Below, piece by piece: positions 15,190 through 37,841 of a stretch of 64,000 bases of DNA. The translations under genes were made by a program, and so were the position numbers. The notes beneath the pieces were generated by a model that did no database searches, was not told the DNA's origin, and worked only from the letters and a program-made list of their open reading frames with translations. Each line of letters opens with the position of its first letter. Positions within the stretch are counted from its first letter, which is position 1. This stretch comes from Orbicella franksi (Eukaryota), in NCBI GenBank assembly GCA_964199315.1, contig OZ116701.1, positions 8,122,001 to 8,186,000 on the forward strand, in the 5' to 3' direction.

Positions 15190-15616
15190 ATGAAGGCTAA
15201 ACTACTTATTCTCTTCGTGCTTGTAGCTGGCTCAATTCTCGCCTGTACAGAAGGCAGTTTATCGTACATTGGGCAACCACCCATTGGAAGAAAGAGAGAG
15301 GTACGCTTGTATTTTGGTTTTTAGCTACAGTCACCAGTCTGGCTTTTTTTTTAGCGAACTTTCTGTACAAGAATACTCTAAGTAAAAACCAAAGGTTCAT
15401 GCAATAAGTCTTGGAGGTACTCCTTAAAATGTTTCATTTGAATCGTTATAAATAACAATCAAACCACTAGTTTCACCAACACTTTTCATTTGGATTACAT
15501 TATCATTTTAGTTTCAGAAGGTCCAACTAGAAGTGTGCCGAGCAGCAAGGCAGATTCGATGTGATGATTTGGAAGACAAAGGAATGAAAGAGATGACTAC
15601 AGGCTACAATCGTTAA
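15190..15616 (+). CDS. Secreted amidated-peptide precursor, copy 1; exons 15190-15300 and 15518-15616; 69 aa MKAKLLILFVLVAGSILACTEG-SLSYIGQPPI-GRKR-EKVQLEVCRAARQIRCDDLEDKGMKEMTTGYNR
   Basis: Hydrophobic signal peptide ending TEG, Gly plus basic RKR site, phase-0 GT...AG intron (GAG|gtacgc, tttcag|AAG), two-Cys tail, stop TAA. Intact in four paralogs. Confidence 0.85.
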
Positions 15617-17428
15617 CTGAAACCCGGAAAACTGACACAAGAACCAAGGACCTAAGGAATGTTTTAACTGGACTTGATATCATGGAATTAAATCTGTCTT
15701 AAATTAACTAATAATAGAAAATAGAAGGAATCGTAAAAATTTAAACGTCTTTTTCTTTGTCACTTTGGCTGATTGGTCTCGATTATGGACTATTTGACGC
15801 GAATAGGGGATTTTTAGTCGTGTGGATAGCACGCTAGATCGTCGAAGGTACACTGTACCCCCGCCCCCCTCCCGCCATCTTGAGTTTTGCCCCTTCCCCT
15901 TCACACTCCTTTGCTCCTTGGTGGTAAGTACAAGTTAGGTTTCTCTTTTCCTGGTCAAGCTAAAAAGACAAAGAGAAACTCAACCATTTCTTTCGATCTA
16001 TTTTTAGCGGTATAGAACTAATTTTCCGTAAATTATCGACACGATAATGACACTGCAAAATTTCGGAAGTTTGATTTTTGCCAGATTGATCTTAAAGCCA
16101 GTAATTTCCCAATACAACTCTTCGTGCGACCATGTTTGCATTGCAAGTTGAAAATGCAAGTATTATCAACGTTCTACAAGTTACAACAACATCATGATAT
16201 TGCATCGAGCTGGAACGAGTTTCAGGGCGTTCGAGCCTAGTGTTTCTGCGCTTCCTTACTACACAGGAGACTCATTTTGCAATGCCACGCCACGTTAAGA
16301 AAAGAGATGTACAGCTGTTTCGACAAAGCTTGTGCACAAAAACGTAAAAGCGTACGCGACAGGACCACTGTATCCGGGGTCCAGCTCGCTTGGCTTATTT
16401 TCTGTTTTGAAGCAAGACGTTCCCGCCTCCCCTCCCCTCCCCCCCCCCCCGAAAAAAAACCTTTTAAAGAGACTGCTACAAGAGTTAAATGAATGGTGTA
16501 AATAGTTTCTTATTGGGGCGTCTATAAGTTGAGACAACAGGAAAACTACGGCTGCTTTTCATTATGCCAGACCAACCAGTTAGAGAGCAGTGGATTAACC
16601 CAGGAAAATGGAGGAACATTTTTCGGTCAAATCTGGACAACTGAAAGGAACGGCTTTGACCATTTTCTATTCGACCACCAAAGTGAAAATCTACGGAATA
16701 GAAGTAGGGCGAACCGATTTGTCAAAATGGAACGGCCAATTGCGGTCCGATCGGTCAGACCGATCCGAAACGGACCTTTCCATTTGACGTTCTACCGAAA
16801 TTTCCGGAATTTTTGGCACCATGGAAAGCACCCTAAGACTCCTCAACCAATCAGTGCGATAGTTCTGCCATAATTTGTATCCTGATGAAACTCATGTGAA
16901 TCTGGGTGTTGAAGTCTGCGTGATTCAAGAACAGCTTGTCAGCTGTTTCCTCTTATGCTGATAACTCGAGCCATTTTTGTTAGGAGAATTTCTCGAGCAG
17001 CAAAAAGGGTCTTGAAATTCAACTAAAAGCTAAATGAAACTCACTTTAACCAGTTTTATTATTATTATTATTATTATTATTTCTATTTTTATTATTATTT
17101 GTTTTTTTTTCATCTTATCTTATTTTATTTTAGGCTCTTTTTCTACTTCTCTACAGATTCTGTGTAAAGTTGAAGGCGGAAATAATGAAATGAAGTTAGA
17201 CACTTACGCTAACAACTTATCTAGTTTAACCTAGTTTATCTTTAAATTGATTGCTACTTGAAAATAGCAGTTAACTAAGATAGAAAAACACCAAAGAGAT
17301 GATAATAAACCATAAAGGAACAAGAAATGAGAAGATTAACTCGGATTACAAACGATGAACCTGAACATTTTAGGCTAAACTTTTCAAGACGAGCAAACCA
17401 TGATGTAGCTCATTTAAATATGCGTGGC

Positions 17429-18367
17429 TTAATTTACTCTTTCAGTCAAAGAGCTTTCTGTTCGCGCTAGAGTATTTAAAGCAAACGAAAATCCATCGTT
17501 ACGAGTGCCTTTCTCCTTCCAAACATCTCCAGGCTCGCTGGGATTTTGATGGTCCGTCCACGCTCTCTTTTCGTTGTCCGCACCAATGGCTTCGCTTTGC
17601 TTCACTTGTTTCAGCTTGCATTCAGTGTCCTCTCTCTTGCGGATGCGCATGCAGTAATCGCCCTTTAGACTCCGGGAAATGCGAAAAGCCTTCTTTGCAG
17701 CTTTCCTGAATTCTTTGCTCTTAAACGAACACACTGAGGGATTAAACAGCGCATGCGAAAAGGCTAGTATCTCCACAGTAACAACGAGAGTCCCGAATGA
17801 GTCGAACTGGTCCATTATAGGTGTCACATACAACAACTCAATGACTTTCAGGGGCGTTAGACACACCACCAACACTATAAATACAACTAAATGCATTCTT
17901 ATGATGCTCCTTCGCATTTTCACGGTGCCACAGATATCAAATCGTGACCGTGATCGAAATCGTTGCACAACGGTGCGGAGTTTTCTCGAAACTCTTGCGA
18001 ACGTAAAGGACAGAATTACAAGAGGTATAAAATAAAGCAAAATAAAGACTGGCACATGATAACAAAGGAAAACTAGTAAGTAGTCATCTGGGCGCTCCTC
18101 GGTACAAACTAGTCTATCTTTCGACATGGTAGTTGAGCTGAAGAAGACCTGTGACTGAGCCAAAATACACGCTGCAATCGAAAAGTAAGTCCGCTGTCAC
18201 CATGTTGCAAAGCAGATTGTTGGTCACATTTCGCAGTTCCTTTACTCGATAGAATACAAACAATATGGCTGTGTCGACGACGAAAGCGAGAACAAGAAGC
18301 GTCACATAAAGTCCAAACCCAAAAACGTGAAGCCATTCGGGAAGCTCGTCTACAGAAAATATGCCTG
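17429..18367 (-). pseudogene. GPCR pseudogene copy 1
   Basis: Paralog of 39630-40880. Lacks the first 21 codons, has a 218-bp frameshifting deletion (TM2-TM4) and a private 40-bp deletion at the C-terminus. Confidence 0.93.
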
Positions 18368-20510
18368 AAAATCGGAGGTCTTCCCTTTGGTTTTGGTCTT
18401 TCGAGACTGATGGGTATAAATTTAGTTTGAGGTAGTTAAGGGTAATAGAACGTAGCGTTGCAACGCTACGTTCTATTGGCCTTAGCTACATCAAGAGGAA
18501 AGGCCCGACACCACCAAAACCAATGTTAAGAGCGATAGGTCAGCTAATGAAGAGAAACGATATTGTAATTACGCGACCAGATAAAGGCTCAAGAGTCGTG
18601 ATCTTGGACAAAACAGAATATGTCAGCCTACTGAGGGAATCATCTATTAGTGATGAAACTAAATTTATACCCATCAGTCTCGAAAGACCAAAAGCAAAGG
18701 GAAGACCTCTGAAGCATTACCACCCACTACTTAAAAAGGAGAAGGATCTGTCCTCCATCGTGCAAAGAATTCTTCCGAAACCCATAGCCGACTCACTGAT
18801 CCAAAAGGGTTCTAGGCTCGCACACCTTTATGGTTTGCCAAAGACCCACAAGAAGAAACTAGCGGTCCGTCCAATCCTGTCAGCAACAAGAACCTACAAT
18901 TACAAGCTTGCTAAGGGGCTTGATGAGGAGCTAAAACCTTTGTCCGTCAACGACCAAACCGTTAATGACATCTTCTCGTTTGCTGGTGATCTTCATGAGA
19001 TGAAAATCGACGAACAGGACATTTTAGTGTCATACGATGTTCCGTCTCTTTTCGCAAACGTACCAGTGGATGAAACAATCGAAATCCTAGCGGAAAAAGC
19101 TTTCAAACCCGATTGATTCAATAAGGAATATGACCTCAACACCACAAAAACTGACCTTATGGAGCTGTTAGAAGTTGCTACGAAAAACCGGCTTTTCCAA
19201 TTCGAAGGAAATCTGTATGAGCAAGTGGACCGGGTTACCATGGGCTCTCCCCTCGGGTCACTAATGGCAAATGCGTTTATGTGCAATATTGAAGAAAAAT
19301 TGGAAAACTAAAACAAGATGCCTGTTTTCTATAAGCGCTATGTCGACGACACCCTCAGCAAATGCCCGATGTTTCATCTGCCTCTGAATTCTTGTTAACA
19401 CTGAATGAAATCCACCCCTCACTCAGCTTCACAATGGAATTCGAAGACAACGGCAAGCTTCCCTTTCTTGGAATAGTGATTATCAGAAATGGTCCCCGAC
19501 TAGATACGAAGGTCTACGTGAAACCGACCGATACTGGGCTTTTACTGCATTACCAAAGCCATGTTGACCTAAGGTATAAACATTCTGTACTGAAGACAAT
19601 GTTAAACCGTGCGTTCAAACTCTCCTCGAATTGGCAGTTCTTCCATCAAGAATGTGAACGTCTTAAAATGGTTTTTGCTCGCCTGCATTATCCCAAAACC
19701 CTCGTAGAGGACGTAGAGGACACCATCAGACATTTTATTGAAATGAAAGTTACTGAGAATGTGTGTTCTAAACAACAAGTATCCATGAACAAGATGCTCC
19801 CATCAGAATTGTCTTACCGTTCAAAGACCAGAAATCGGCGAATGCGGTAAGACACCAACTCGGTGATCTCAGTCGAAAGATTGATGCCGTTGTCCAGCCT
19901 GTTTACACAAGTCAGAATATCAAGAGACAATTCAAACCAAAGGAACATAAACCTCCAATTGAGAATCAACAAAACGTTGTTTATTATTACGAGTGTGGTC
20001 TGTGCGATGCAGACTATGCCGGCCTCACGAGTTGACACCTACATCAACGTGTGGAGGAACATAAGCGATCAACAGTCGGCAACGACGTAAAGGATGAGCA
20101 CGGAAAGGATCCAGAGACCATTGGAAGCAATTTCAAGATTTTGAAAAAATGTCAGAGTAAACTCGACTGTTTGATTATTGAAAAGCTTTTTATTCGTAAA
20201 CTTCAACCAAAATTGAACAAACAGAGTGACTCGATCCGCGCGAAGCTATTTACTTAATTATTTTTAAATTATTTTATTTCAAATCGTTTCTATCGCCTTA
20301 ACGTTTTTATTGCTCATGCCGCAATTTTCTTGTATTGTTTCTATGTAGTCAGTGTCTCATTAGCATTTTCATTAGCATTCTCATAATCGATTGTATATAT
20401 TTGGACGCATGCAAAACTTTTACTTTTCAATTTGAAAATGACCGTCGAGCGGTCGGTTGTCTTTTAACGTTAACGTTTTTAGTGAAATCCGTTTCTAAAA
20501 ATTTGTTGAT
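18368..20510 (+). mobile_element. Penelope-like retroelement (RT plus GIY-YIG), 5'-truncated with inverted 5' end, inactive; copy 1
   Basis: ITRPDKG, LYGLPKTHK, RPILS, SYDVPSLF, MGSPLG, RYVDD, LPFLG, VYVKPT, VVYYYECGLCDADY, EKLFIRKLQPKLNKQ. Contains stops and frameshifts. Confidence 0.93.
18444..18477. repeat. Perfect 34-bp palindrome at the fold-back centre of the retroelement 5' end (also 24692-24723 and 32607-32642)
   Basis: aatagaacgtagcgttg|caacgctacgttctatt. Confidence 0.95.
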
Positions 20511-21613
20511 TCGAAAAAATCGTTTTACCATAAAAGCATAGCATTTGTAACACACAGCCCTTTTTCTCCATTATATTCCTTTCGTCTTCTTGTTAACTGA
20601 TAGTAGCAATTATTTGTTATAGCATACAACAAAGCTAAGTTCAAAATAGCTGCCGGCAGATGAATCGGACTATTTTTAACGTCGTACCACAACTATTTTT
20701 TGCCTCGTACAACATGGATTAAAACCATTAATGCTAAAAATCGTCTCCTGTTACATACTAGCAATGTGAGTTTACTAAACTGGGAAGTGCTAGAAAGTTC
20801 GGAGCAAGTGTTTTATTAGTCAAAGAAAACTGCAAAATATTGACAGCATTCATAACAGAAAACTCTACAGAATGTTTCCACCTAGGCGCTCCCCATGTCG
20901 TTTCTCTCAAATTGAGGCCAGTAATGCCTCATCAACAAAACTACACCACTCTCTAGACTGAAGGGCATCGACATTTATTGATTACGTGATCTTAGTGGTC
21001 AAGTATTGAAGTGCAGCAAGCATGAGAAGAGCCCTGATAATTATGCCGAGCAACTCCTCTTTGAAAAGCTGCCAACTTGATTTCGACTTCCGCTCATTTA
21101 GTCTCTCTTTGTAGCAACAAATGTTCAAAACCAACGAAAACGAAAATACTGGATCTGTCAGAGAATAAAAGATCCCGCAATTGTTGATAAAGTTCTAACA
21201 AATTTTCCGAGTGCAAAATGTGCTGACCATTTGCAATTCTTCACCGCTATCGTGAAATTATGATATTATGATGTGGTTGAGCTCGTCTTGGTCTCTTACA
21301 GTAAGGGGAAGGAAGAGGGGAGTGGAGGGAGAGAGGATAAAATGGTAAATGGCCAATCCGAACGCAACTTACAATCAGGGATTTCTGCTTGCCATTTGTA
21401 CAAACCTTTGACTAAACGGTTTCTTCGTGTAAAGGGTAAATAACCTGAGTGTCATTAGTGCAGCTATGACTGCAATACGAGTTTTCTCCAATTTTACCAA
21501 GTTACCAGCGCAATCCCAAAATATTTAGTTAAAACGGCGGCAAAGATACTATAAAAAAAGCTTGCAAGAAGAAAAAATATTATCTTATTCGTCGATAGAA
21601 GAAAAGAGGAGCT

Positions 21614-22036
21614 ATGAAGGCTAAACTACTTATTCTCTTCGTGCTTGTAGCTGGCGCAATTCTCGCCTGTACAGAAGGCAGTATATTGTCCATTGGGCAA
21701 CCACCCATTGGAAGAAAGAGGGAGGTACGCTTGAGTTTTGGTTTTTAACTACAGTCACCAGTTTGGCTTGTTTTTTAGTGAGCTTTCTGTACAAGAATAC
21801 TTTAAGTAATAAGCAAAGGTTCATGCAATAAGTCTTGGAGTTACTCCTTAAAATGTTTCATTTGAATCGTTGTAACAATCAAACCACTAGTTTCACCAAC
21901 ACTTTCCATTTGGATTATATTATCATTTTAGTTTCAGAAGGTCCAACGAGATGTGTGCCGAGCAGCAAGGCAGATTCAATGTGATGATTTAGAAAACGAA
22001 GGAATGAAAGAGATGACTACAGGCTACAATCGTTAA
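21614..22036 (+). CDS. Secreted amidated-peptide precursor, copy 2; exons 21614-21724 and 21938-22036; peptide SILSIGQPPI-GRKR
   Basis: Same architecture and splice sites, 69 aa, tail KVQRDVCRAARQIQCDDLENEGMKEMTTGYNR. Confidence 0.85.
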
Positions 22037-23645
22037 CTGAAACCCGGAAAACTGACACAAGAACCAAGGACTTAAGGAACGTTTTAACTGGACTTGATAT
22101 CATGGGATTAAATCTGGCTTAAATTAACTAATATTAGAAAATAAAAGGAATCGTAAAAATTTAAACGTCTTTTTCTTTGTCACTTTGGCTCATTGGTCTC
22201 GATTATGGGCTATTTATGCGAATAGGTGCGAATAGGGCATTGTTAGTCGTGTGGATAGAACGCTAGATCGTCGAAGGTGCACGGTAACTCTCCCCCCTCC
22301 CCCCCTCCTAGAGTTTTGCCCCTTCCCCGTCACACTATTCTACTCCTTGGTGGTGAGTAGAAGTTAGGTTTCTCTTTTCCTGGTCAAGCTAAAAAGGCAA
22401 AGAGAAACTCAACCATTTCTTTCCATCTGTTTTCAGAGGTATAGGACTAATTTGCCATAAATTGTCTACACGATAATGATACTGCAAAATTTCGGGAAGT
22501 TTGATTTTTGCCCCAAGGATCTTAAAGCCAGTAATTTTCCAATGGAACTTGTCGTGCGACCATGTTTGCATTACAAGTTGAAAATGCAAGTATTATCAAC
22601 ATTCTACATTTACAACAACATCATGATATTGTATCCAGCAGGAACGAGTTTCAGGGCGTTCGAGCCTAGTGTTTCTGGGCTTAGTTACTACACATGAGAC
22701 TCATTTTGCAATGCCACGCCACTTTAAGAAAAGAGATGTACAGCTGTTTCGACAAAGCTTGTGCACAAAAACGTAAAAGCGTACGCGACAGGACCACTGT
22801 ATCCGGGGTCCAGCTCGCTTGGCTTATTTTCTGTTTTGAAGCGAGACGTTCCCGTCTCCCCTCCCCTCCCCCTCTCCCCTCCGAAAAAAAAAACTCTTTT
22901 AAAAAGACTGCTACGACAGTTTAATGAATGGTATAAATAGCTTCTTATTAGGGCGTCTATAAGTTGAGACAACTGGAAAACTACGGGTGCTTTTCATTAT
23001 GCCAGACCAACCGGTCAGAGACCAGCGGGATTAACCCAGGAAAATGGAATAAAATTTTTCGGTCAAATCTGGACAACTGAAAGGAATGGCTCTGAACACT
23101 TTCTATTCGGCCACAAAAGTGAAAATCTACGGAAAAGAAGTAGGGCAACGAACCGATTTGTCAAAATGGAACGGCCAATTGCGGTCCGACCGGTCAGACC
23201 GAACCGAAATGGACCTTTCCACTTGACGTTCTACTGAAATTGCCGGAATTTTTTCATCTTATCTTATTTTATTTCAGGCTCTTTTTCTACTTTTCCACTG
23301 ATTCTGTGTAAAGTGGAAGGCGGAAATAAACGCGTGAAAATCCAATTTGCTTGGACATGCCAAGGCTTATTGAAAGATGTGGCTCTGATTCACTTTTTGA
23401 AATGAAGTTAGACACTTACTTTAGCAGCTGATCTAGTTTAATCACGTACAAAATTGATTGCTACTTGAAGATAGCAGTTAACTAAGATAGAAAAACACCA
23501 AGGAGATGATAATAAACCATAAAGGAACAAGAAATGAGAAGATTAACTCGGATTACAAACGATGAACCTGAACATTTTAGGCTAAACTTTTCAAGACGAG
23601 CAAACCATGATGTAGCTCATTTAAATATGCGTGGCTTAATTTACT

Positions 23646-24614
23646 CTAACTTTTGCCATAGTCTTCCTCCCTAGGTATATCAGTCGTTTCAGTCAAAGAG
23701 CTTTCTGTTCGCGCTAGAGTATTTAAAGCAAACGAAAATCCATCGTTACGAGTGCCTTTCTCCTTCCAAACATCTCCAGGCTCGCTGGGATTTTGATGGT
23801 CCGTCCACGCTCTCTTTTCGTTGTCCGCACCAATGGCTTCGCTTTGCTTCACTTGTTTCAGCTTGCATTCAGTGTCCTCTCTCTTGCGGATGCGCATGCA
23901 GTAATCGCCCTTTAGACTCCGGGAAATGCGAAAAGCCTTCTTTGCAGCTTTCCTGAATTCTTTGCTCTTAAACGAACACACTGAGGGATTAAACAGCGCA
24001 TGCGAAAAGGCTAGTATCTCCACAGTAACAACGAGAGTCCCGAATGAGTCGAACTGGTCCATTATAGGTGTCACATACAACAACTCAATGACTTTTAGGG
24101 GCGTTAGACACACCACCAACACTATAAATACAACTAAATGCATTCTTATGATGCTCCTTCGCATTTTCACGGTGCCACAGATATCAAATCGTGACCGTGA
24201 TCGAAATCGTTGCACAACGGTGCGGAGTTTTCTCGAAACTCTTGCGAACGTAAAGGACAGAATTACAAGAGGTATAAAATAAAGCAAAATAAAGACTGGC
24301 ACATGATAACAAAGGAAAACTAGTAAGTAGTCATCTGGGCGCTCCTCGGTACAAACTAGTCTATCTTTCGACATGGTAGTTGAGCTGAAGAAGACCTGTG
24401 ACTGAGCCAAAATACACGCTGCAATCGAAAAGTAAGTCCGCTGTCACCATGTTGCAAAGCAGATTGTTGGTCACATTTCGCAGTTCCTTTACTCGATAGA
24501 ATACAAACAATATGGCTGTGTCGACGACGAAAGCGAGAACAAGAAGCGTCACATAAAGTCCAAACCCAAAAACGTGAAGCCATTCGGGAAGCTCGTCTAC
24601 AGAAAATATGCCTG
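23646..24614 (-). pseudogene. GPCR pseudogene copy 2
   Basis: Same 5' truncation and 218-bp deletion as copy 1. Confidence 0.93.
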
Positions 24615-26757
24615 AAAATCGGAGGTCTTCCCTTTGGTTTTGGTCTTTCGAGACTGATGGGTATAAATTTAGTTTGAGGTAGTTAAGGGCAATAGAACGT
24701 AGCGTTGCAACGCTACGTTCTATCGGCCTTAGCTACATCAAGAGGAAAGGCCCGACACCACCAAAACCAATGTTAAGAGCGATAGGTCAGCTAATGAAGA
24801 GAGACGATATTGTAATTACGCGACCGGATAAAGGCTCGAGAGACGTGATCTTGGACAAAACAGAATATGTCAGCCTACTGAGGGAATCATCTATTAGTGA
24901 TGAAACTAAATTTATACCCATCAGTCTCGAAAGACCAAAAGCAAAGGGAAGACCTCTGAAGCATTACCACCCACTACTTAAAAAGGAGAAGGATCTGTCC
25001 TCCATCGTGCAAAGAATTCTTCCGAAACCCATAGCCCACTCACTGATCCAAAAGGGTTCTAGGCTCGCACACCTTTATGGTTTGCCAAAGACCCACAAGA
25101 AGAAACTAGCGGTCCGTCCAATCCTGTCACCAACAAGAACCTACAATTACAAGCTTGCTAAGGGGCTTGATGAGGAGCTAAAACCTTTGTCCGTCAACGA
25201 CCAAACCGTTAATGACATCTTCTCGATTGCTGGTGATCTTCATGAGATGAAAATCGACGAACAGGACATTTTAGTGTCATACGATGTTCCGTCTCTTTTC
25301 GCAAACGTACCAGTGGATGAAACAATCGAAATCCTAGCGGAAAAAGCTTTCAAACCCGATTGATTCAATAAGGAATATGACCTCAACATCACAAAAACTG
25401 ACCTTATGGAGCTGTTAGAAGTTGCTACGAAAAACCGGCTTTTCCAATTCGAAGGAAATCTGTATGAGCAAGTGGACCGGGTTGCCATGGGCTCTCCCCT
25501 CGGGTCACTAATGGCAAATGCGTTTATGTGCAATATTGAAGAAAAATTGGAAAAGCAAAACAAGATGCCTGTTTTCTATAACCGCTATGTCGACGACACC
25601 CTCAGCAAATGCCCGATGTTTCATCTGCCTCTGAATTCTTGTTAACACTGAATGAAATCCACCCCTCACTCAGCTTCACAATGGAATTCGAAGACAACGG
25701 CAAGCTTCCCTTTCTTGGAATAGTGATTACCAGAAATGGTCCCCGACTAGATACGAAGGTCTACGTGAAACCGACCGATACTGGGCTTTTACTGCATTAC
25801 CAAAGCCATGTTGACCTAAGGTATAAACATTCTGTACTGAAGACAATGTTAAACCGTGCGTTCAAACTCTCCTCGAATTGGCAGTTCTTCCATCAAGAAT
25901 GTGAACGTCTTAAAATGGTTTTTGCTCGCCTGCATTATCCCAAAACCCTCGTAGAGGACGTAGAGGACACCATCAGACATTTTATTGAAATGAAAGTTAC
26001 TGAGAATGTGTGTTCTAAACAACAAGTATCCATGAATAAGATGCTCCCATCAGAATTGTCTTACCGTTCAAAGACCAGAAATCGGCGAATGCGGTAAGTC
26101 ACCAACTCGGTGATCTCAGTCGAAAGATTGATGCCGTTGTCCAGCCTGTTTACACAAGTCAGAATATCAAGAGACAATTCAAACCAAAGGAACATAAACC
26201 TCCAATTGAGAATCAACAAAACGTTGTTTATTATTACGAGTGTGGTCTGTGCGATGCAGACTATGCCGGCTTCACGAGTTGACACCTACATCAACGTGTG
26301 GAGGAACATAAGCGATCAACAGTCGGCAACGACGTAAAGGATGAGCACGGAAAGGATCCAGAGACCATTGAAAGCAACTTCAAGATTTTGAAAAAATGTC
26401 AGAGTAAACTCGACTGTTTGATTTTTGAAAAGCTTTTTATTCGTAAACTTCAACCAAAATTGAACAAACAGAGTGACTCGATCCGCGCGAAGCTATTTAC
26501 TTAATTATTTTAAAATTATTTTATTTCAAATCGTTTCTATCGCCTTAACGTTTTTATTACTCATGCCGCAATTTTCTTGTATTGTTTCTATGTAGTCAGT
26601 GTCTCATTAGCATTTTCATTAGCATTCTCATAATCGATTGTATATATTTGGACGCATGCAAAACTTTTACTTTTGAACTTGAAAATGACCGTCGAGCGGT
26701 CGGTTGTTTTTTAACGTTAACGCTTTTAGTGAAATCCGTTTCTAAAAATTTGTTGAT
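24615..26757 (+). mobile_element. Penelope-like retroelement, copy 2
   Basis: 2143 bp, same ends and the same shared lesions (e.g. KPD-stop) as copies 1 and 3. Confidence 0.93.
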
Positions 26758-29527
26758 TCGAAAAAATCGTTTTACCATAAAAGCATAGCATTTGTAACAC
26801 ACAGCCCTTTTTCTCCATTATATTTCCTTTCGTCTTCTTGTTAACTGATAGTAGCAATTATTTGTTATAGTATACAACAAAGCTAAGTTCAAAATAGCTG
26901 CCGGCAGATGAATCGGACTATTTTTAACGTCGTACCACAACTATTTTTTGCCTCGTACAACATGGATTAAAACCATTAATGCTAAAAATCGTCTCCTGTT
27001 ACATACTAGCAGTGTGAGTTTACTAAACTGGGAAGTGCTAGAAAGTTCGGAGCAAGTGTTTTATTAGTCAAAGAAAACTGCAAAATATTGACAGCATTCA
27101 TAACAGAAAACTCTACAGAATGTTTCCAACTAGCCGCTCCCCATGTCGTTTCTCTCAAATTGAGGCCAGTAATGCCTCATCAACAAAACTACACCACTCT
27201 CTAGACTGAAGGGCATCGACATTTATTGATTACGTGATCTTAGTGGTCAAGTATTGAAGTGCAGCAAGCATGAGAAGAGCCCTGATAATTATGCCGAGCA
27301 ACTCCTCTTTGAAATGCTGCCAACTTGATTTCGACTTCCGCTCATTTAGTCTCTCTTTGTAGCAACAAATGTTCAAAACCAACGAAAACGAAAATACTGG
27401 ATCTGTCAGAGAATACAAGATCCCGCAATTGTTGATAAAGTTCTAACAAATTTTCCGAGTGCAAAATGTGCTGACCATTTGCAATTCTTCACCGCTATCG
27501 TGAAATTATGATATTATGATGTGGTTGAGCTCGTCTTGGTCTCTTACAGTAAGGGGAAGGAAGAGGGGAGTGGAGGGAGAGAGGATAAAATGGTAAATGG
27601 CCAATCCGAACGCAACTTACAATCAGGGATTTCTGCTTGCCATTTGTACAAACCTTTGACTAAACGGTTTCTCCGTGTAAAGAGTAAATAACCTGAGTGT
27701 CATTAGTGCAGCTATGACTGCAATACGAGTTTTCTCCAATTTTACCAAGTTACCAGCGCAATCCCAAAATATTTAGTAATCAAAGCAAGAAATACAGAGC
27801 CACTGGAAAACGAACTATATACAAGAAATAACTTTCTGTATCAGTTAGACGACTCTACACAAATATAACTCGATAATGCTAAAACTAGAGACTTCTATGC
27901 TTTACTAAACCGGAAAATTTACACTGTCAGCAAGACTGGCCCAATGAATTGAAGCAGTAAAATAAGACTAGATGAGAATGTCTGGATAAAAATTTTCACC
28001 TCCATAAAGAGCATCTGCAAGGAGACAAAATTGAAGGAATTCCAGTTTAAATTAATTCATAGGATTGTAGTTACTAAAAAAGAGCTTCATCGATGTGGGA
28101 TTAAAGCGGACGATGAATATCTCTACTGTGGTAAGAAAGATTCAATTGAAGAGAAACTATTTGGTATCATATCTGGCCCATACGAAAAAGAAATATTAAA
28201 GAAATTTAATTACACGATCCTATTTATGAAATACTTCATATACACCAGTAAGATGGAGAACCAAGCTATTTACCTTTCAGTCTTTGTTAATAAAGTTTTA
28301 TTTAAGTATGGAATAGAAAACTTTAGTCCGGCATTAGCTACGAAAAACTGCCCCTCGCAAAAGCGCAGAACCTTACATAAAATTAGTTAAATTATACTTG
28401 AGAGCAATGTTAACGTTAGTAATGGAAACCAATGTTAAGTAGCCTAAGCGATATATGTGATAGTTGTTGTAATTACTAGTAGTGCAGGAAACCAATAAAG
28501 TACTTAACTACTAAAAAAAAAATTAGTGCACGAGGATTTAATTTCATGTTTCCTAGTGCTTCCAGTACCTCCTTCCTTTTGGCAATATCAGTGTGTTCCT
28601 TCACATTTTTGGAATAAAGGCGCAAATTTGGACTACATACTACATACTACTGCATTACATACTTAGCTGAGTTTTAAATGTTAGTAAACTTACCATTCCA
28701 AAATTTTGTTTCCCTTTAGGTTTTCTCTTCATAGTAGGTTGCTCACGTAACTTGAACTTATAGCTCTATTTTGGATTTGAGACTTGAGTAGGAGTTCCTT
28801 TATTCCAAAAAGTTATTTTGAAGACAGAAATTTAACCAGCCAAAACTTGATACGATCGATAAACTCATCTTTAGGTCATCTTCCTCTCGAGCTCTGGGCT
28901 TACTCAAGAAATCTTAGCTTTTAATGTACTCCTATTTCCATATATCTACAACTGAAAAGTTGTCTTTTGCCAGGTCAAATCCTGAGCGAAACAAACGTCA
29001 ATGCAAGATTCTGTCATTTACAGAATAAAGGATTCCGGCATTGACAAGAAAGTGCAAGTGAATTGAAAAATATGGTCTGAAACTTCGTTGAACTTAAATT
29101 ATAAGATCCGTCTATTAAATAACCATTTACAATAATTAAGCCAGTGTGGTTTATCTACCTTAAAGTGAACTTCAGAGTCCAGATGCCGGCTGTAGCCACG
29201 CGGTAAATTGAAACACAGTCACAGTTTACAATTAACAATTCCATGTATTTATGGAAACTTCCTTTATGGGTATTAACACAGAATCATGGAAAAAAAGATA
29301 ACAGGTCCCATTAACCGCTCTATCCAAAATAGCTTCCTCTTACACAAGTTGATCTAGGTTAATATTATGGCTATGACGAAAGGAAAAGCCACGTTCACCA
29401 CAATTTTACTATTGATAGCTCGGCAGACTTGTATTTCATTGGTTAAAACGGCGGCAAAGATACTATAAAAAAAGCTTGCAAGAAGAAAAAATATTATCTT
29501 ATTCGTCGATAGAAGAAAAGAGGAGCT

Positions 29528-29947
29528 ATGAAGGCTAAACTACTTATTCTCTTCGTGCTTGTAGCTGGCTCAATTCTCGCCTGTACAGAAGGCAGTATAT
29601 CCATTGGGCAACCACCCATTGGAAGAAAGAGAGAGGTACGCTTGAGTTTTGGTTTTTAACTACAGTCACCAGTTTGGCTTGTTTTTTAGTGAGCTTTCTG
29701 TACAAGATTACTTTAAGTAATAAGCAAAGGTTCATGCAATAAGTCTTGGAGTTACTCCTTAAAATGTTTCATTTGAATCGTTGTAACAATCAAACCACTA
29801 GTTTCACCAACACTTTCCATTTGGATTATATTATCATTTTAGTTTCAGAAGGTCCAACGAGATGTGTGCCGAGCAGCAAGGCAGATTCAATGTGATGATT
29901 TAGAAAACGAAGGAATGAAAGAGATGACTACAGGCTACAATCGTTAA
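29528..29947 (+). CDS. Secreted amidated-peptide precursor, copy 3; exons 29528-29635 and 29849-29947; peptide SISIGQPPI-GRKR
   Basis: 68 aa; in-frame 3-bp deletion inside the peptide; splice sites intact. Confidence 0.85.
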
Positions 29948-31562
29948 CTGAAACCCGGAAAACTGACACAAGAACCAAGGACTTAAGGAACGTTTTAACT
30001 GGACTTGATATCATGGGATTAAATCTGGCTTAAATTAACTAATATTAGAAAATAAAAGGAATCGTAAAAATTTAAACGTCTTTTTCTTTGTCACTTTGGC
30101 TCATTGGTCTCGATTATGGGCTATTGATGCGAATAGGTGCGAATAGGGCATTGTTAGTCGTGTGGATAGAACGCTAGATCGTCGAAGGTGCACGGTAACT
30201 CTCTCCCCCCCCCCCCCCCCTCCTAGAGTTTTGCCCCTTCCCCGTCACACTATTCTACTCCTTGGTGGTGAGTAGAAGTTAGGTTTCTCTTTTCCTCGTC
30301 AAGCTAAAAAGGCAAAGAGAAACTCAACCATTTCTTTCCATCTGTTTTCAGAGGTATAGGACTAATTTGCCATAAATTGTCTACACGATAATGATACTGC
30401 AAAATTTCGGGAAGTTTGATTTTTGCCCCAAGGATCTTAAAGCCAGTAATTTTCCAATGGAACTTGTCGTGCGACCATGTTTGCATTGCAAGTTGAAAAT
30501 GCAAGTATTATCAACATTCTACATTTACAACAACATCATGATATTGTATCCAGCAAGAACGAGTTTCAGGGCATTCGAGCCTAGTGTTTCTGGGCTTAGT
30601 TACTACACATGAGACTCATTTTGCAATGCCACGCCACTTTAAGAAAAGAGATGTACAGCTGTTTCGACAAAGCTTGTGCACAAAAACGTAAAAGCGTACG
30701 CGACAGGACCACTGTATCCGGGGTCCAGCTCGCTTGGCTTATTTTCTGTTTTGAAGCAAGACGTTCCCGTCTCCCCTCCCCTCCCCCTCTCCCCTCCGAA
30801 AAAAAAAAAACTCTTTTAAAAAGACTGCTACGACAGGTTAATGAATGGTATAAATAGCTTCTTATTAGGGCGTCTATAAGTTGAGACAACTGGAAAACTA
30901 CGGGTGCTTTTCATTATGCCAGACCAACCGGTCAGAGACCAGCGGGATTAACCCAGGAAAATGGAATAAAATTTTTCGGTCAAATCTGGACAACTGAAAG
31001 GAATGGCTCTGAACACTTTCTATTCGGCCACAAAAGTGAAAATCTACGGAAAAGAAGTAGGGCAACGAACCGATTTGTCAAAATGGAACGGCCAATTGCG
31101 GTCCGACCGGTCAGACCGAACCGAAACGGACCTTTCCACTTGACGTTCTACTGAAATTGCCGGAATTTTTTCATCTTATCTTATTTTATTTCAGGCTCTT
31201 TTTCTACTTTTCCACTGATTCTGTGTAAAGTGGAAGGCGGAAATAAACGCGTGAAAATCCAATTTGCTTGGACATGCCAAGGCTTATTGAAAGATGTGGC
31301 TCTGATTCACTTTTTGAAATGAAGTTAGACACTTACTTTAGCAGCTGATCTAGTTTAATCACGTACAAAATTGATTGCTACTTGAAGATAGCAGTTAACT
31401 AAGATAGAAAAACACCAAGGAGATGATAATAAACCATAAAGGAACAAGAAATGAGAAGATTAACTCGGATTACAAACGATGAACCTGAACATTTTAGGCT
31501 AAACTTTTCAAGACGAGCAAACCATGATGTAGCTCATTTAAATATGCGTGGCTTAATTAACT

Positions 31563-32531
31563 CTAACTTTTGCCATAGTCTTCCTCCCTAGGTATATCAG
31601 TCGTTTCAGTCAAAGAGCTTTCTGTTCGCGCTAGAGTATTTAAAGCAAACGAAAATCCATCGTTACGAGTGCCTTTTTCCTTCCAAACATCTCCAGGCTC
31701 GCTGGGATTTTGATGGTCCGTCCACGCTCTCTTTTCGTTGTCCGCACCAATGGCTTCGCTTTGCTTCACTTGTTTCAGCTTGCATTCAGTGTCCTCTCTC
31801 TTGCGGATGCGCATGCAGTAATCGCCCTTTAGACTCCGCGAAATGCGAAAAGCCTTCTTTGCAGCCTTCCTGAATTCTTTGCTCATAAACGAACACACTA
31901 AGGGATTAAACAGCGCATGCGAAAAGGCTAGTATCTCCACAGTAACAACGAGCGTCCCGAATGGGTCGAACTGGTCCATTATAGGTGTCACATGCAACAA
32001 CTCAATGACTTTTAGGGGCGTTAGACACACCACCAACACTATAAATACAACTAAATGCATTCTTATGATGCTCCTTCGCATTTTCACGGTGCCACAGATA
32101 TCAAATCGTGACCGTGATCGAAATCGTTGCACAACGGTGCGGAGTTTTCTCGAAACTCTTGCGAACGTAAAGGACAGAATTACAAGAGGTATAAAATAAA
32201 GCAAAATAAAGACTGGCACATGATAACAAAGGAAAACTAGTAAGTAGTCATCTGGGCGCTCCTCGGTACAAACTAGTCTATCTTTCGACATGGTAGTTGA
32301 GCTGAAGAAGACCTGTGGCTGAGCCAAAATACACGCTGCAATCGAAAAGTAAGTCCGCTGTCACTATGTTGCAAAGCAGATTGTTAGTCACATTTCGCAG
32401 TTCCTTTACTCGATAGAATACAAACAATATGGCTGTGTCGACAACGAAAGCGAGAACAAGAAGCGTCACATAAAGTCCAAACCCAAAAACGTGAAGCCAT
32501 TCGGGAAGCTCGTCTACAGAAAATATGCCTG
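31563..32531 (-). pseudogene. GPCR pseudogene copy 3
   Basis: Same 5' truncation and 218-bp deletion. Confidence 0.93.
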
Positions 32532-34674
32532 AAAATCGGAGGTCTTCCCTTTGGTTTTGGTCTTTCGAGACTGATGGGTATAAATTTAGTTTGAGGTAGT
32601 TAAGGGCAATAGAACGTAGCGTTGCAACGCTACGTTCTATTGGCCTTAGCTACATCAAGAGGAAAGGCCCGACACCACCAAAACCAATGTTAAGAGCGAT
32701 AGGTCAGCTAATGAAGAGAGACGATATTGTAATTACGCGACCGGATAAAGGCTCGAGAGACGTGATCTTGGACAAAACAGAATATGTCAGCCTACTGAGG
32801 GAATCATCTATTAGTGATGAAACTAAATTTATACCCATCAGTCTCGAAAGACCAAAAGCAAAGGGAAGACCTCTGAAGCATTACCACCCACTACTTAAAA
32901 AGGAGAAGGATCTGTCCTCCATCGTGCAAAGAATTCTTCCGAAACCCATAGCCCACTCACTGATCCAAAAGGGTTCTAGGCTCGCACACCTTTATGGTTT
33001 GCCAAAGACCCACAAGAAGAAACTAGCGGTCCGTCCAATCCTGTCACCAACAAGAACCTACAATTACAAGCTTGCTAAGGGGCTTGATGAGGAGCTAAAA
33101 CCTTTGTCCGTCAACGACCAAACCGTTAATGACATCTTCTCGATTGCTGGTGATCTTCATGAGATGAAAATCGACGAACAGGACATTTTAGTGTCATACG
33201 ATGTTCCGTCTCTTTTCGCAAACGTACCAGTGGATGAAACAATCGAAATCCTAGCGGAAAAAGCTTTCAAACCCGATTGATTCAATAAGGAATATGACCT
33301 CAACATCACAAAAACTGACCTTATGGAGCTGTTAGAAGTTGCTACGAAAAACCGGCTTTTCCAATTCGAAGGAAATCTGTATGAGCAAGTGGACCGGGTT
33401 GCCATGGGCTCTCCCCTCGGGTCACTAATGGCAAATGCGTTTATGTGCAATATTGAAGAAAAATTGGAAAAGCAAAACAAGATGCCTGTTTTCTATAAGC
33501 GCTATGTCGACGACATCCTCAGCAAATGCCCGATGTTTCATCTGCCTCTGAATTCTTGTTAACACTGAATGAAATCCACCCCTCACTCAGCTTCACAATG
33601 GAATTCGAAGACAACGGCAAGCTTCCCTTTCTTGGAATAGTGATTATCAGAAATGGTCCCCGACTAGATACGAAGGTCTACGTGAAACCGACCGATACTG
33701 GGCTTTTACTGCATTACCAAAGCCATGTTGACCTAAGGTATAAACATTCTGTACTGAAGACAATGTTAAACCGTGCGTTCAAACTCTCCTCGAATTGGCA
33801 GTTCTTCCATCAAGAATGTGAACGTCTTAAAATGGTTTTTGCTCGCCTGCATTATCCCAAAACCCTCGTAGAGGACGTAGAGGACACCATCAGACATTTT
33901 ATTGAAATGAAAGTTACTGAGAATGTGTGTTCTAAACAACAAGTATCCATGAACAAGATGCTCCCATCAGAATTGTCTTACCGTTCAAAGACCAGAAATC
34001 GGCGAATGCGGTAAGACACCAACTCGGTGATCTCAGTCGAAAGATTGATGCCGTTGTCCAGCCTGTTTACACAAGTCAGAATATCAAGAGACAATTCAAA
34101 CCAAAGGAACATAAACCTCCAATTGAGAATCAACAAAACGTTGTTTATTATTACGAGTGTGGTCTGTGCGATGCAGACTATGCCGGCTTCACGAGTTGAC
34201 ACCTACATCAACGTGTGGAGTAACATAAGCGATCAACAGTCGGCAACGACGTAAAGGATGAGCACGGAAAGGATCCAGAGACCATCGGAAGCAACTTCAA
34301 GATTTTGAAAAAATGTCAGAGTAAACTCGACTGTTTGATTTTTGAAAAGCTTTTTATTCGTAAACTTCAACCAAAATTGAACAAACAGAGTGACTCGATC
34401 CGCGCGAAGCTATTTACTTAATTATTTTAAAATTATTTTATTTCAAATCGTTTCTATCGCCTTAACGTTTTTATTACTCATGCCGCAATTTTCTTGTATT
34501 GTTTCTATGTAGTCAGTGTCTCATTAGCATTTTCATTAGCATTCTCATAATCGATTGTATATATTTGGACGCATGCAAAACTTTTACTTTTCAATTTAAA
34601 AATGACCGTCGAGCGATCGGTTGTTTTTTAACGTTAACGCTTTTAGTGAAATCCGTTTCTAAAAATTTGTTGAT
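32532..34674 (+). mobile_element. Penelope-like retroelement, copy 3
   Basis: 2143 bp, same ends and lesions. Confidence 0.93.
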
Positions 34675-37419
34675 TCGAAAAAATCGTTTTACCATAAAAG
34701 CATAGCATTTGTAACACACAGCCCTTTTTCTCCATTATATTCCTTTCGTCTTCTTGTTAACTGATAGTAGCAATTATTTGTTATAGTATACAACAAAGCT
34801 AAGTTCAAAATAGCTGCCGGCAGATGAATCGGACTATTTTTAACGTCGTACCACAACTATTTTTTGCCTCGTACAACATGGATTAAAACCATTAATGCTA
34901 AAAATCGTCTCCTGTTACATACTAGCAGTGTGAGTTTACTAAACTGGGAAGTGCTAGAAAGTTCGGAGCAAGTGTTTTATTAGTCAAAGAAAACTGCAAA
35001 ATATTGACAGCATTCATAACAGAAAACTCTACAGAATGTTTCCAACTAGCCGCTCCCCATGTCGTTTCTCTCAAATTGAGGCCAGTAATGCCTCATCAAC
35101 AAAAATACACCACTCTCTAGACTGAAGGGCATCGACATTTATTGATTACGTGATCTTAGTGGTCAAGTATTGAAGTGCAGCAAGCATGAGAAGAGCCCTG
35201 ATAATTATGCCGAGTAACTCCTCTTTGAAATGCTGCCAACTTGATTTCGACTTCCGCTCATTTAGTCTCTCTTTGTAGCAACAAATGTTCAAAACTAACG
35301 AAAACGAAAATACTGGATCTGTCAGAGAATACAAGATCCCGCAATTGTTGATAAAGTTCTAACAAATTTCCGAGTGCAAAATGTGCTGACCATTTGCAAT
35401 TCTTCACCGCTATCGTGAAATTATGATATTATGATGTGATTGAGCTCGTCTTGGTCTCTTACAGTAAGGGGAAGGAAGAGGGGAGTGGAGGGAGAGAGGA
35501 TAAAATGGTAAATGGCCAATCCGAACGCAACTTACAATCAGGGATTTCTGCTTGCCATTCGTACAAACCTTTGACTAAACGGTTTCTCCGTGTAAAGAGT
35601 AAATAACCTGAGTGTCATTAGTGCAGCTATGACTGCAATACGAGTTTTCTCCAATTTTACCAAGTTACCAGCGCAATCCCAAAATATTTAGTAATCAAAG
35701 CAAGAAATACAGAGCCACTGGAAAACGAACTATATACAAGAAATAACTTTCTGTATCAGTTAGACGACTCTACACAAATATAACTCGATAATGCTAAAAC
35801 TAGAGACTTCTATGCTTTACTAAACCGGAAAATTTACACTGTCAGCAAGACTGGCCCAATGAATTGAAGCAGCAAAATAAGACTAGATGAGAATGTCTGG
35901 ATAAAAATTTTCACCTCCATAAAGAGCATCTGCAAGGAGACAAAATTGAAGGAATTCCAGTTTAAATTAATTCATAGGATTGTAGTTACTAAAAAAGAGC
36001 TTCATCGATGTGGGATTAAAGCGGACGATGAATATCTCTACTGTGGTAAGAAAGATTCAATTGAAGAGAAACTATTTGGTATCATATCTGGCCCATACGA
36101 AAAAGAAATATTAAAGAAATTTAATTACACGATCCTATTTATGAAATACTTCATATACACCAGTAAGATGGAGAACCAAGCTATTTACCTTTCAGTCTTT
36201 GTTAATAAAGTTTTATTTAAGTATGGAATAGAAAACTTTAGTCCGGCATTAGCTACGAAAAACTGCCCCTCGCAAAAGCGCAGAACCTTACATAAAATTA
36301 GTTAAATTATACTTGAGAGCAATGTTAACGTTAGTAATGGAAACCAATGTTAAGTAGCCTAAGCGATATATGTGATAGTTGTTGTAATTACTAGTAGTGC
36401 AGGAAACCAATAAAGTACTTAACTACTAAAAAAAAAAATTAGTGCACGAGGATTTAATTTCATGTTTCCTAATGTTTCCAGTGCCACCTTCCTTTTGGCA
36501 ATATCAATGTGTTCGTTCACATTTTTGGAATAAAGGCGCAAATTTGGACTACATACTACATACTACTGCATTACATACTTAGCTGAGTTTGTAATGTTAG
36601 TAAGCTTACCATTCCAAAATTTTGTTTCCCTTTAGATTTTCTCTTCATGGTAGGTTGCTCACGTAACTTGAACTTATAGCTCTATTTTGGATTTGAGACT
36701 TGAGTAGGAGTTCCTTTATTCCAAAAAGTTATTTTGAAGACAGAAATTTAACCAGCCAAAACTTGATACGATCGATAAACTCATCTTTAGGTCATCTTCC
36801 TCTCGAGCTCTGGGTTTACTCAAGAAATCTTAGCTTTTAATGTACTCCTATTTCCATATATCTACAACTGAAAAGTTATCTTTTGCCAGGTCAAATCCTG
36901 AGCGAAACAAACGTCAATGCAAGATTCTGTCATTTACAGAATAAAGGATTCCGGCATTGACAACAAAGTGCAAACGAATTGAAAAATATGGTCTGAAACT
37001 TCGTTGAACTTAAATTATAAGATCCGTCTATTAAATAACCATTTACAATAATTAAGCCAGTGTGGTTTTTATCTTCCATAAATTGAACTTCAAAGTCCAG
37101 ATGCCGGCTGTAGCCACGCGGTAAATTGAAACACAGTCACAGTTTACAATTAACAATTCCATGTATTTATGGAAACTCTACTTCCTTTATGGGTATTAAT
37201 ATAGAATCAAGGAAAAAAAGACAACAGGTCCCATTAACCTCTCTATCCCAAATAGCTTACTCTTACATAAGTTGATCTAGGTTAATATCACCACAATTTT
37301 ACTATTAATAGCTCGGCAGAATTGTATTTCATTGGTTAAAACGACGGCAAAGATACCATAAAAAAGCTTGCAAGAAGAAAAAATATTATCTTATTCGTCG
37401 ATAGAAGAAAAGAGGAACT

Positions 37420-37841
37420 ATGAAGGCTAAACTACTTATTCTCTTCGTACTTGTAGCTGGCTCAATTGTCGCCTGCACGGAAGGCAGGAGAGGGCCCGTT
37501 TGGCAAGCACCCGTTGGAAGAAAGAGAGAGGTACGCTTGTGTTGTGGTTTTTAACTACAGTCACCAGTTTGGCTTTTTTTCAGCGAGCTTTCTGTACAAG
37601 AATACTTTAAGTAATAACCAAAGGTCCATGCAATAAGCCTTGGAGTTACTCCTTAAAATGTTTCATTTGAATCGTTATAACAATCAAACCACTAGTTTCA
37701 CTAACACTTTCCATTTGGATTATATTATCGTTTTAGTTTCAGAAGGTCCAACGAGATGTGTGCCGAGCAGCAAGGCAGATTCAGTGTGATGATTTAGAAA
37801 ACGAAGGAATGAAAGAGATGACTACAGGCTACAATCGTTAA
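37420..37841 (+). CDS. Secreted amidated-peptide precursor, copy 4; exons 37420-37530 and 37743-37841; peptide RRGPVWQAPV-GRKR
   Basis: 69 aa; signal, GRKRE, splice sites and Cys tail conserved; mature segment strongly diverged. Confidence 0.85.

Follow-up and report, generated by a model that had tools for sequence, protein, structure and literature searches.

Recurrent change in the peptide segment of a tandem family of small prepropeptide genes from stony corals

Why should neighbouring copies of a small gene differ most in the few codons that appear to encode their product? This question is raised by a 64,000-nucleotide stretch of the Orbicella franksi genome (contig OZ116701.1, written C4 below; C4:8,122,001-8,186,000, on a chromosome-scale contig of a 497-Mb stony-coral genome), the whole of which we call the window. 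Four units of 6.4-7.9 kb are repeated in tandem there, each with a two-exon peptide gene at its start. An initial annotation, made from the letters alone, had described in these genes a conserved frame around a hypervariable peptide and proposed diversifying selection on a signalling, recognition or defence product. We keep its numbering of the copies (c1-c4), call a pseudogene in the window E and the loci upstream of the window A-D, and give signed positions (e.g. -445, +88) relative to the ATG of each copy. c1-c4 are paralogs in tandem, members of a family of small prepropeptide genes that is restricted to stony corals, and an excess of change in the peptide segment recurs in largely independent comparisons, including another coral genus.

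In all four copies, exon 1 encodes a signal-like leader of 22 amino acids (aa), a peptide of 9-10 aa and the residues G-R-K-R-E. It ends in the donor GAG/GTACG (slash, splice point), which is followed by an intron of ~210 nucleotides (nt) and by a second exon for an acidic tail of 32-34 aa whose two Cys are arranged as a C-x7-C loop. By inspection only, the leader is a putative signal peptide, made of MKAK, a 14-residue hydrophobic core and small residues at -3/-1 (T-E-G). The 70-aa precursor holds a single G-basic site and no second one. Spliced mRNA contigs of two relatives (L054 and L055) use an acceptor 6 nt further upstream, reading GRKRE-FE/FQ-K..., and exon 2 is therefore 105 nt long (GRKRE-FQ-KVQRD...) rather than 99. 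c3 is almost identical to c2 apart from the loss of a codon and two further sites.

Recounting the differences reproduced the figures first obtained by hand: c2 and c4 differ at 9/30 nt in the peptide, 5/66 in the signal and 1/99 in exon 2; c1 and c4 at 11/30 and, in the signal, 4/66 (three of the four synonymous); and c1 and c2 by three peptide changes, all nonsynonymous. The codon missing from c3 (TTG) lies inside the peptide, leaves the frame intact and is the sole coding indel among the four copies, while GRKRE (with one synonymous AGA>AGG in c2), both exon-2 Cys, the donor and the acceptor are the same in all of them. As a neutral yardstick we used introns and proximal flanks; far flanks, which cannot be aligned owing to duplication boundaries, were dropped. 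Peptide divergence is several-fold over that of the adjoining introns. For c2 and c4 the peptide count compares with a local noncoding rate of 4.7% (binomial 6e-6), and for c3 and c4 it is 7/27 vs 30/651 (Fisher 3e-4). Among five close copies, 13 nonsynonymous and no synonymous changes fall in the peptide, as compared with 10:10 in signal, GRKRE and exon 2 together (Fisher 0.002); pooling these with the other comparisons gives 20:0 in the peptide vs 17:15 elsewhere (p = 1e-4).

The same excess was found beyond c1-c4. Gene A and its relative L054 differ at 4/24 peptide positions and at 22/1199 elsewhere (p 0.001), A and C at 2/24 and at ~5/520 in the homologous core, two paralogs of another coral (L042a and L042b) at 8/30 and at 11/474 elsewhere (p 3e-6), and L042a and L020 at 10/30, with 6.5% in noncoding sequence (p 2e-5). 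Between genera, nucleotide identity is 13/30 in the stretch behind the cleavage site, which is flanked by 26/30 in the signal and by 28/30 in the core, GRKRE and intron start.

Within the peptide, change is unevenly spread. Aligned from the C-terminus, the peptides of the type found in c1-c4 follow x(3-7)-[VI/S]-[G/S/A]-[Q/L/W]-[P/A/G/I]-P-[I/V/M/L]; the Pro at -2, the aliphatic last residue, the Gly and RKRE never fail, and the residues directly behind the signal cleavage site vary in both sequence and length. Mean amino-acid identity is 0.36-0.40 for the peptide, 0.68-0.85 for the signal, 0.68-0.84 for the tail and 1.0 for GRKRE, and inside the peptide it is 0.53-0.57 for the last four residues and 0.26-0.28 for the N-terminal part. 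The initial annotation had taken this picture to be atypical of classical neuropeptides. This view does not hold, as the x-P-aliphatic-Gly-RKR end is kept and it is mainly the N-terminal extension that varies, as in other cnidarian families (PMC7523074).

Nor do all peptides of the family change quickly. The c4/D class shares R-G-P-V-G with the coral Desmophyllum pertusum and, judged by its sequences, is not hypervariable. Its persistence as far as Desmophyllum would place the change in episodes that follow duplication and would speak against an unceasing arms race. With a peptide of this class and, as in Desmophyllum, a convergent, orthologous G-protein-coupled receptor (GPCR) beside it, c4 resembles an ancestral copy; c1-c3 look like derived copies, whose peptide has lost the N-terminal RR-GP.

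A second process is superimposed on these differences. c4 is a mosaic: 17 sites at which D and c4 agree against c1 and c3 all fall within -445..+88 and none outside, whereas the 30 sites at which c3 equals c4 are all found upstream of -586, and those at which c2, c3 and c4 are alike, 27 in number, all downstream of +189. The breakpoints are placed between 36834 and 36975 on the left and between 37507 and 37608 on the right, with a module of 0.5-0.8 kb between them. Divergence of c3 from c4 is 0.35% at +531..+1100, 4.3% at -445..0, 6% in the signal, 26% in the peptide, 5.3% in the intron and 1% in exon 2. At least one conversion or exchange event thus separates the promoter-to-peptide module of c4 from its flanks. 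D itself was rejected as a recent donor to c4, the two differing by 4.5% inside the tract as compared with 0.35% between c3 and c4 at +531..+1100. c1 and c3 are unusually similar in the tract (2.6% at -445..0 vs 7% in the intron and 10% downstream), and conversion of the c2/c3 ancestor by c1 is therefore at least as likely as conversion of c4 by a D-like donor. A search of the genome for an extant outside paralog that could have donated the c1-c3 peptide segment, allowing up to 3 mismatches, matched only c1 and c2, and conversion from such a paralog is therefore rejected for this class. The gene core was converted in a second case as well: between -53 and +490, A matches C at 99%, as compared with 76-91% outside (C4:8,097,206-8,098,661 vs 8,103,637-8,105,134).

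These results change how the four copies can be compared. Since c4 is a mosaic, its contrasts with c2 and with c1 go back to a single event; c2 and c3, for their part, duplicated recently and are nearly identical. The pairwise comparisons are therefore not independent. Conversion together with recent duplication also means that near-identical flanks are no evidence of constraint. The clustering in the peptide exceeds chance, and much of the conserved frame described around it is, for c2-c4, a matter of recent duplication; exon 2 of c1 changes at the intron rate. A short gene-conversion tract from an outside paralog had been named as one finding that would undo the proposal. The c4 module does group with D, an event of this kind, but the changes still cluster in the peptide inside the tract, where 7/19 class-defining sites fall in the 30/533 nt of the peptide (p = 5e-5). 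Of the diversifying selection proposed, what survives is a peptide whose evolutionary regime differs from that of the remaining gene; the retention of RGPVG to Desmophyllum points to episodes after duplication.

Searching the whole genome with DNA and with a profile recovered nine loci of the family, all of them within 62 kb (C4:8,097,926-8,159,838) and none elsewhere in this genome. They are laid out as head-to-head pairs (A/B, C/D and E/c1) followed by the tandem run c2-c4. Both here and in another coral genus (L020, L042), the head-to-head pairs unite two subfamilies, with '[FY]VP..' peptides on the minus strand and '..GQxP-aliphatic' peptides on the plus strand. On three contigs of the other genus, the member on the minus strand is a pseudogene (ATG then TAG, plus frameshifts). 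One annotated genome, together with metagenome and transcriptome contigs of coral origin, yielded relatives, all with GRKRE and then the same tail (Table 1); G-R-K-R-E does not vary among the 8/8 loci that are intact here, nor among six relatives in other corals. Word-index protein searches returned one match each, and the spliced relatives surfaced only with an exhaustive profile search. The D. pertusum protein has the exon structure, GRKRE and tail of the family and a peptide resembling those of c4 and D; it differs in a longer N-terminal pro-part (RTTDGA), and a single copy was present in the 20 kb inspected. Database annotation of the family consists of this one 'hypothetical protein'. Plausible amide names for the peptides had no relevant match in the searchable literature, and such peptides are not mentioned in the Nematostella deorphanisation paper or the coral-larva cell atlas, nor is the family in the scleractinian preprohormone list of PMC7523074. 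The peptide motif, roughly [VI]-G-Q-x-P-aliphatic-amide, is thus undescribed, while the gene type itself is already known.

Table 1. Family members, relatives and neighbouring features (positions in the window; UTR, untranslated region; TM4, transmembrane helix 4)
Feature	Position	Strand	Description
c1	15190..15616	+	exon 1 15190-15300, intron 15301-15511, exon 2 15512-15616 including stop; acceptor by homology to L054/L055
c1, parts of exon 1	15190-15300	+	signal 15190-15255; peptide SLSYIGQPPI 15256-15285; GRKRE 15286-15300
c2	21614..22036	+	exon 1 21614-21724; peptide SILSIGQPPI 21680-21709; exon 2 21932-22036
c3	29528..29947	+	exon 1 29528-29635; peptide SISIGQPPI 29594-29620, one codon shorter; exon 2 29843-29947
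c4	37420..37841	+	exon 1 37420-37530; peptide RRGPVWQAPV 37486-37515; exon 2 37737-37841
c4 mosaic module	36975..37507 (-445..+88)	+	promoter, 5'UTR, signal, peptide; groups with D, not c2/c3
TATA-like boxes	c1 15129; c2 21550; c3 29464; c4 about 37355		~60-65 nt 5' of ATG
A	upstream of window	-	peptide FVPMGRPA
B	upstream of window	+	peptide VLGASQAPM
C	upstream of window	-	peptide FVPTGGPA
D	upstream of window	+	peptide RRGPVGLAPI
E	8983..9395	-	pseudogene, second (A-type) subfamily; frameshift in signal/peptide region, donor lost, exon 2 kept with early stop
Class-A GPCR	39630..40880	-	intact, 416 aa; convergent with c4
Truncated GPCR copies, units 1-3	17429-18163, 23646-24410, 31563-32327	-	TM4 to C-terminus, 244-254 aa, 91% identical to 39630-40880
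Two open reading frames, units 1-3	18523-19116, 19362-19850; repeats 24770-26097, 32687-34014		197 and 162 aa; no Pfam match
L020			peptide HSNGAYTGQGPI
L042			two paralogs with identical signal peptides; peptides FNPPVSQGPI and FGAAPAAQIPL
L055			peptide APPIGQAPM
L054			98% identical to gene A; peptide FVPSQRPA
L050			peptide FVPMPS
Desmophyllum pertusum KAJ7390764.1 / A0A9X0DAA8 (P0004)			'hypothetical protein OS493_022322'; peptide ARGPVGWPPM

Two side observations concern noncoding parts of these genes. The TATA-like box reads TATAAAAA in c1-c3 and CATAAAAA in c4, with a c4-specific change at -63. The first ~60 nt of the intron (37531-37590 in c4, with equivalents in c1-c3; L020:4063-4125) are ~90% identical between coral genera; in the same comparison the peptide-coding stretch just 5' is ~45% identical and the remaining intron 40-70%. 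This intron start, which is not kept in Desmophyllum, may be a splicing or regulatory element.

The GPCR gene next to c4 is another feature retained between corals. An orthologous GPCR, 68% identical over 413 aa, lies downstream of and convergent with the D. pertusum family gene (window 37420-40880; L056:10001-12990); c4 is the positional counterpart of that gene. A further GPCR lies at 46040-47149. Such conserved microsynteny is consistent with a ligand-receptor pair, and is not proof of one. Units 1-3 carry truncated copies of the receptor, altered at conserved positions such as the last helix's NP motif, which means that the receptor gene was cut by the boundary of the duplicated unit.

Evidence for transcription comes mainly from relatives. 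L054 and L055 lack the intron exactly and are therefore spliced RNA, meaning that members of the family are transcribed and spliced. Both contigs also run 300-680 nt 5' of the ATG (L054:1-309, L055:1-683), colinear with genomic DNA and far past the TATA-like box, which points to transcription from further 5', to an extended 5'UTR or to contigs into which adjacent or unspliced transcripts were assembled. For c2, 0.43 of 14 exon-1 words were present in poly-A RNA assemblies, and RNA contigs extend over exon 2, the 3'UTR and the intron's 3' part, with a depth of about 4-5. A DNA contig of another coral sample covers 21589-21733 with 2 differences and represents a c2-type exon 1 with an identical peptide. 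Otherwise, DNA contigs on c2 break around the peptide and so give no usable view of its polymorphism.

We give about an even chance to the reading in which these genes form a neuropeptide- or hormone-like family, with rapid change of the ligand in new duplicates and conversion keeping the rest of the gene uniform. The precursor would be ordered as a signal peptide, one short peptide, a Gly as amidation donor, an RKR convertase site and the acidic C-x7-C tail, and its product would be a C-terminally amidated, Pro-containing peptide with the core [VI]-G-Q-[AP]-P-[IVM]-NH2, cleavage and amidation both being predicted from sequence. The peptide would probably act through a GPCR as a neuropeptide or hormone, for which the neighbouring conserved receptor would be the obvious candidate. 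Two classes would coexist, an older one with (R)GPVxxxP-aliphatic (c4, D and Desmophyllum) and a derived one with xxxxIGQPPI (c1-c3). After each duplication, the residues behind the cleavage site would gain nonsynonymous changes and in-frame indels faster than introns, and would do so repeatedly, while conversion or unequal exchange would homogenise the flanks, leaving c4 similar to c2/c3 except in the promoter-to-peptide module. As the cause of the rapid change we infer positive selection in episodes, with neofunctionalisation of the ligand, a signal that multi-nucleotide mutations may have inflated.

The exact mature N-terminus can be predicted in part from processing rules derived by mass spectrometry in Nematostella: a cut after RR, a cut before Q, Pro as the second or third residue, and an acidic residue placed one or two positions ahead of the cut (PMC11087051). 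At the sequence level only, the motifs of this family fit those rules, with TEG-RR/GPV in c4 and D, an internal Q-P-P in c1-c3, TEG/APP in L055 and TDG/FVP in the A-type genes (slash, predicted cut). The predicted products are GPVWQAPV-NH2 for c4 and GPVGLAPI-NH2 for D; c1-c3 would yield either the full peptide or, more likely, pQPPI-NH2 from all three. We regard as doubtful a more specific version, in which a linked ligand-receptor module was kept from Desmophyllum and its partial duplications yielded the c1-c3 ligands, selected away from the GPVxxxP-aliphatic-amide. If it is true, the module would encode lineage-specific agonists or antagonists of a single receptor, with spawning and settlement as examples of what they might signal.

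Several points weigh against a rapidly changing ligand under selection. The independent evolutionary events are few, and neither c4 vs D (3/30) nor c1 vs c2 (3/30) by itself significantly exceeds the intron rate. Where changes adjoin one another (69-79 in the c-type genes; 76, 77, 79 and 80 in A vs L054), one multi-nucleotide event could account for a whole run, and the rate as well as the nonsynonymous:synonymous ratio would then be inflated. Gene conversion is pervasive (c4; A/C), so flanks may look young while peptides are old. In addition, exon 2 of c1 is without constraint: it has changed about as fast as the intron, and each of its four private changes (R>L, D>E, Q>R, E>K) is nonsynonymous; from the sequence, this would be either relaxed constraint or adaptive change of the conserved tail, in this copy only. 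On the side of expression, the RNA contigs on c2 show no exon 1 and no splice joint, one raw poly-A run had no reads on c2, and an exact look-up of the spliced c3 and c4 proteins found none on record.

In the main rival reading, the variable residues would be a discarded spacer. Aminopeptidase-type trimming up to a protective Q or X-P-P would then leave pQPPI-amide from c1-c3 and pQAPV- or GPVWQAPV-amide from c4, and the excess would come from multi-nucleotide mutations and small indels in 12-18 nt. Q-P-P-I matches both cnidarian N-terminal protection motifs (PMC7523074, PMC11087051), the c1-c3 peptides differ only upstream of IGQPPI, in a stretch that includes the codon indel, and across the family peptide length varies from 8 to 12 aa, always on the N-terminal side; the low identity of the N-terminal part relative to the last four residues and the occurrence of changes in adjacent runs fit as well. 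However, a neutral linker should match the intron rate, and the observed values are 26-33% vs 5-8%, with 0 synonymous changes of 13-20. The c4/D class also keeps its N-terminal R-G-P-V-G as far as Desmophyllum, and core positions change too (Q/L, G/W, P/A, I/V). On balance, we consider the spacer somewhat unlikely.

We find it decidedly doubtful that c1-c3 are young, redundant or decaying duplicates, which arose in company with a retroelement and truncated fragments of the receptor, and whose peptides drift while only c4 (and D) work. Such decay would agree with the presence of only a truncated GPCR copy in each of units 1-3, with E being already a pseudogene, with the unconstrained exon 2 of c1 and with the lack of c2 splicing in the RNA contigs. 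Nevertheless, the frames, start codons, GRKRE, both splice sites and TATA-like box of c1-c3 are intact, their sole coding indel is in frame, and drift predicts the intron rate rather than a 4-6-fold local excess. The c2-type exon 1 with an identical peptide in another coral sample and the exon-1 words in poly-A assemblies also speak against it. Finally, the initial proposal of defence, toxin or external recognition/pheromone peptides in a continual arms race, to which tandem copy-number expansion and conserved signal and pro-parts around a fast product with a nonsynonymous excess (as in conotoxin and antimicrobial superfamilies) would lend themselves, is highly improbable given a product of 4-12 aa that is Pro-rich, uncharged or weakly charged, Cys-free and of no amphipathic cationic character, an amidated C-terminal motif and a whole older-class peptide conserved across distant corals, a peptide-type GPCR as conserved neighbour, and change that looks episodic after duplication.

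The preferred reading, that of a signalling family with rapid ligand change after duplication, would have consequences beyond this locus. To our knowledge, peptide signalling in reef corals is known from few families (GLWamide, RFamide, PRXamide and RWamide), to which the cluster would add an undescribed, stony-coral-restricted one. An adjacent candidate receptor and natural ligand variants would make pairing, as well as ligand evolution after duplication, testable with synthetic peptides. The locus also carries a caution of method: in tandem arrays with gene conversion, pairwise counts of a 'conserved frame, variable product' overstate diversifying selection unless recombination is modelled.

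In conotoxins and in amphibian and other antimicrobial peptides, which also form tandem families, signal and pro-regions are kept while the product gains nonsynonymous changes. Here, by contrast, the product is tiny and Cys-free (8-12 aa, with a net charge that, before trimming, is 0 for c1-c3 and does not exceed +2 for c4/D, where a Cys-rich or cationic amphipathic product would have at least 12 aa), its amidated end is conserved, the most conserved part is the non-product tail, and one class is kept across distant corals. The maturation-inducing MIH/MIHR system of the hydrozoan Clytia pairs very short, amidated, Pro-containing peptides of the PRPamide type with a class-A GPCR, and its variants come from paralogous precursors. 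The predicted short amidated Pro-containing peptides of the present family, with their paralogous precursors and candidate class-A GPCR, may be likened to it, by description only. MIH precursors, however, contain several peptide copies with the motif x-P-R-x-amide, whereas here there would be a single copy, with Pro at -2 and no Arg. The same distinction applies to the X1PRX2amides (GPRGamide etc.), which are tetrapeptides and have Pro at -3, Arg at -2 and many copies; the c-type peptides have Pro at -2, no Arg at -2, and one copy per precursor.

In architecture, the parallel is with the single-copy preprohormones of hexacorals (Antho-RWamide/LRWamide, Antho-RIamide, Antho-RNamide and Antho-KAamide types), in which one peptide stands directly behind the signal and is followed by Gly and basic residues (Koch & Grimmelikhuijzen 2020, PMC7523074). 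The present family differs in its P-aliphatic-amide, which takes the place of RW-, RI-, RN- or KA-amide, and in its Cys-loop tail on an exon of its own; its C-termini read PPI, APV, API, APM, RPA and GPA rather than the (L/I)RW-amide of the Antho-RWamide/LRWamide type. Hexacoral peptides are protected at the N-terminus by pQ or X-P(-P), and their paralogs, of which a species has several, have a common amidated C-terminus and differ at the N-terminus, as in pQGLRWamide, pQLLGIRWamide and pQPVASQKHGLRWamide (PMC7523074). In the same manner, the genes described here would each encode a single peptide after the signal, with paralogs that vary N-terminally.

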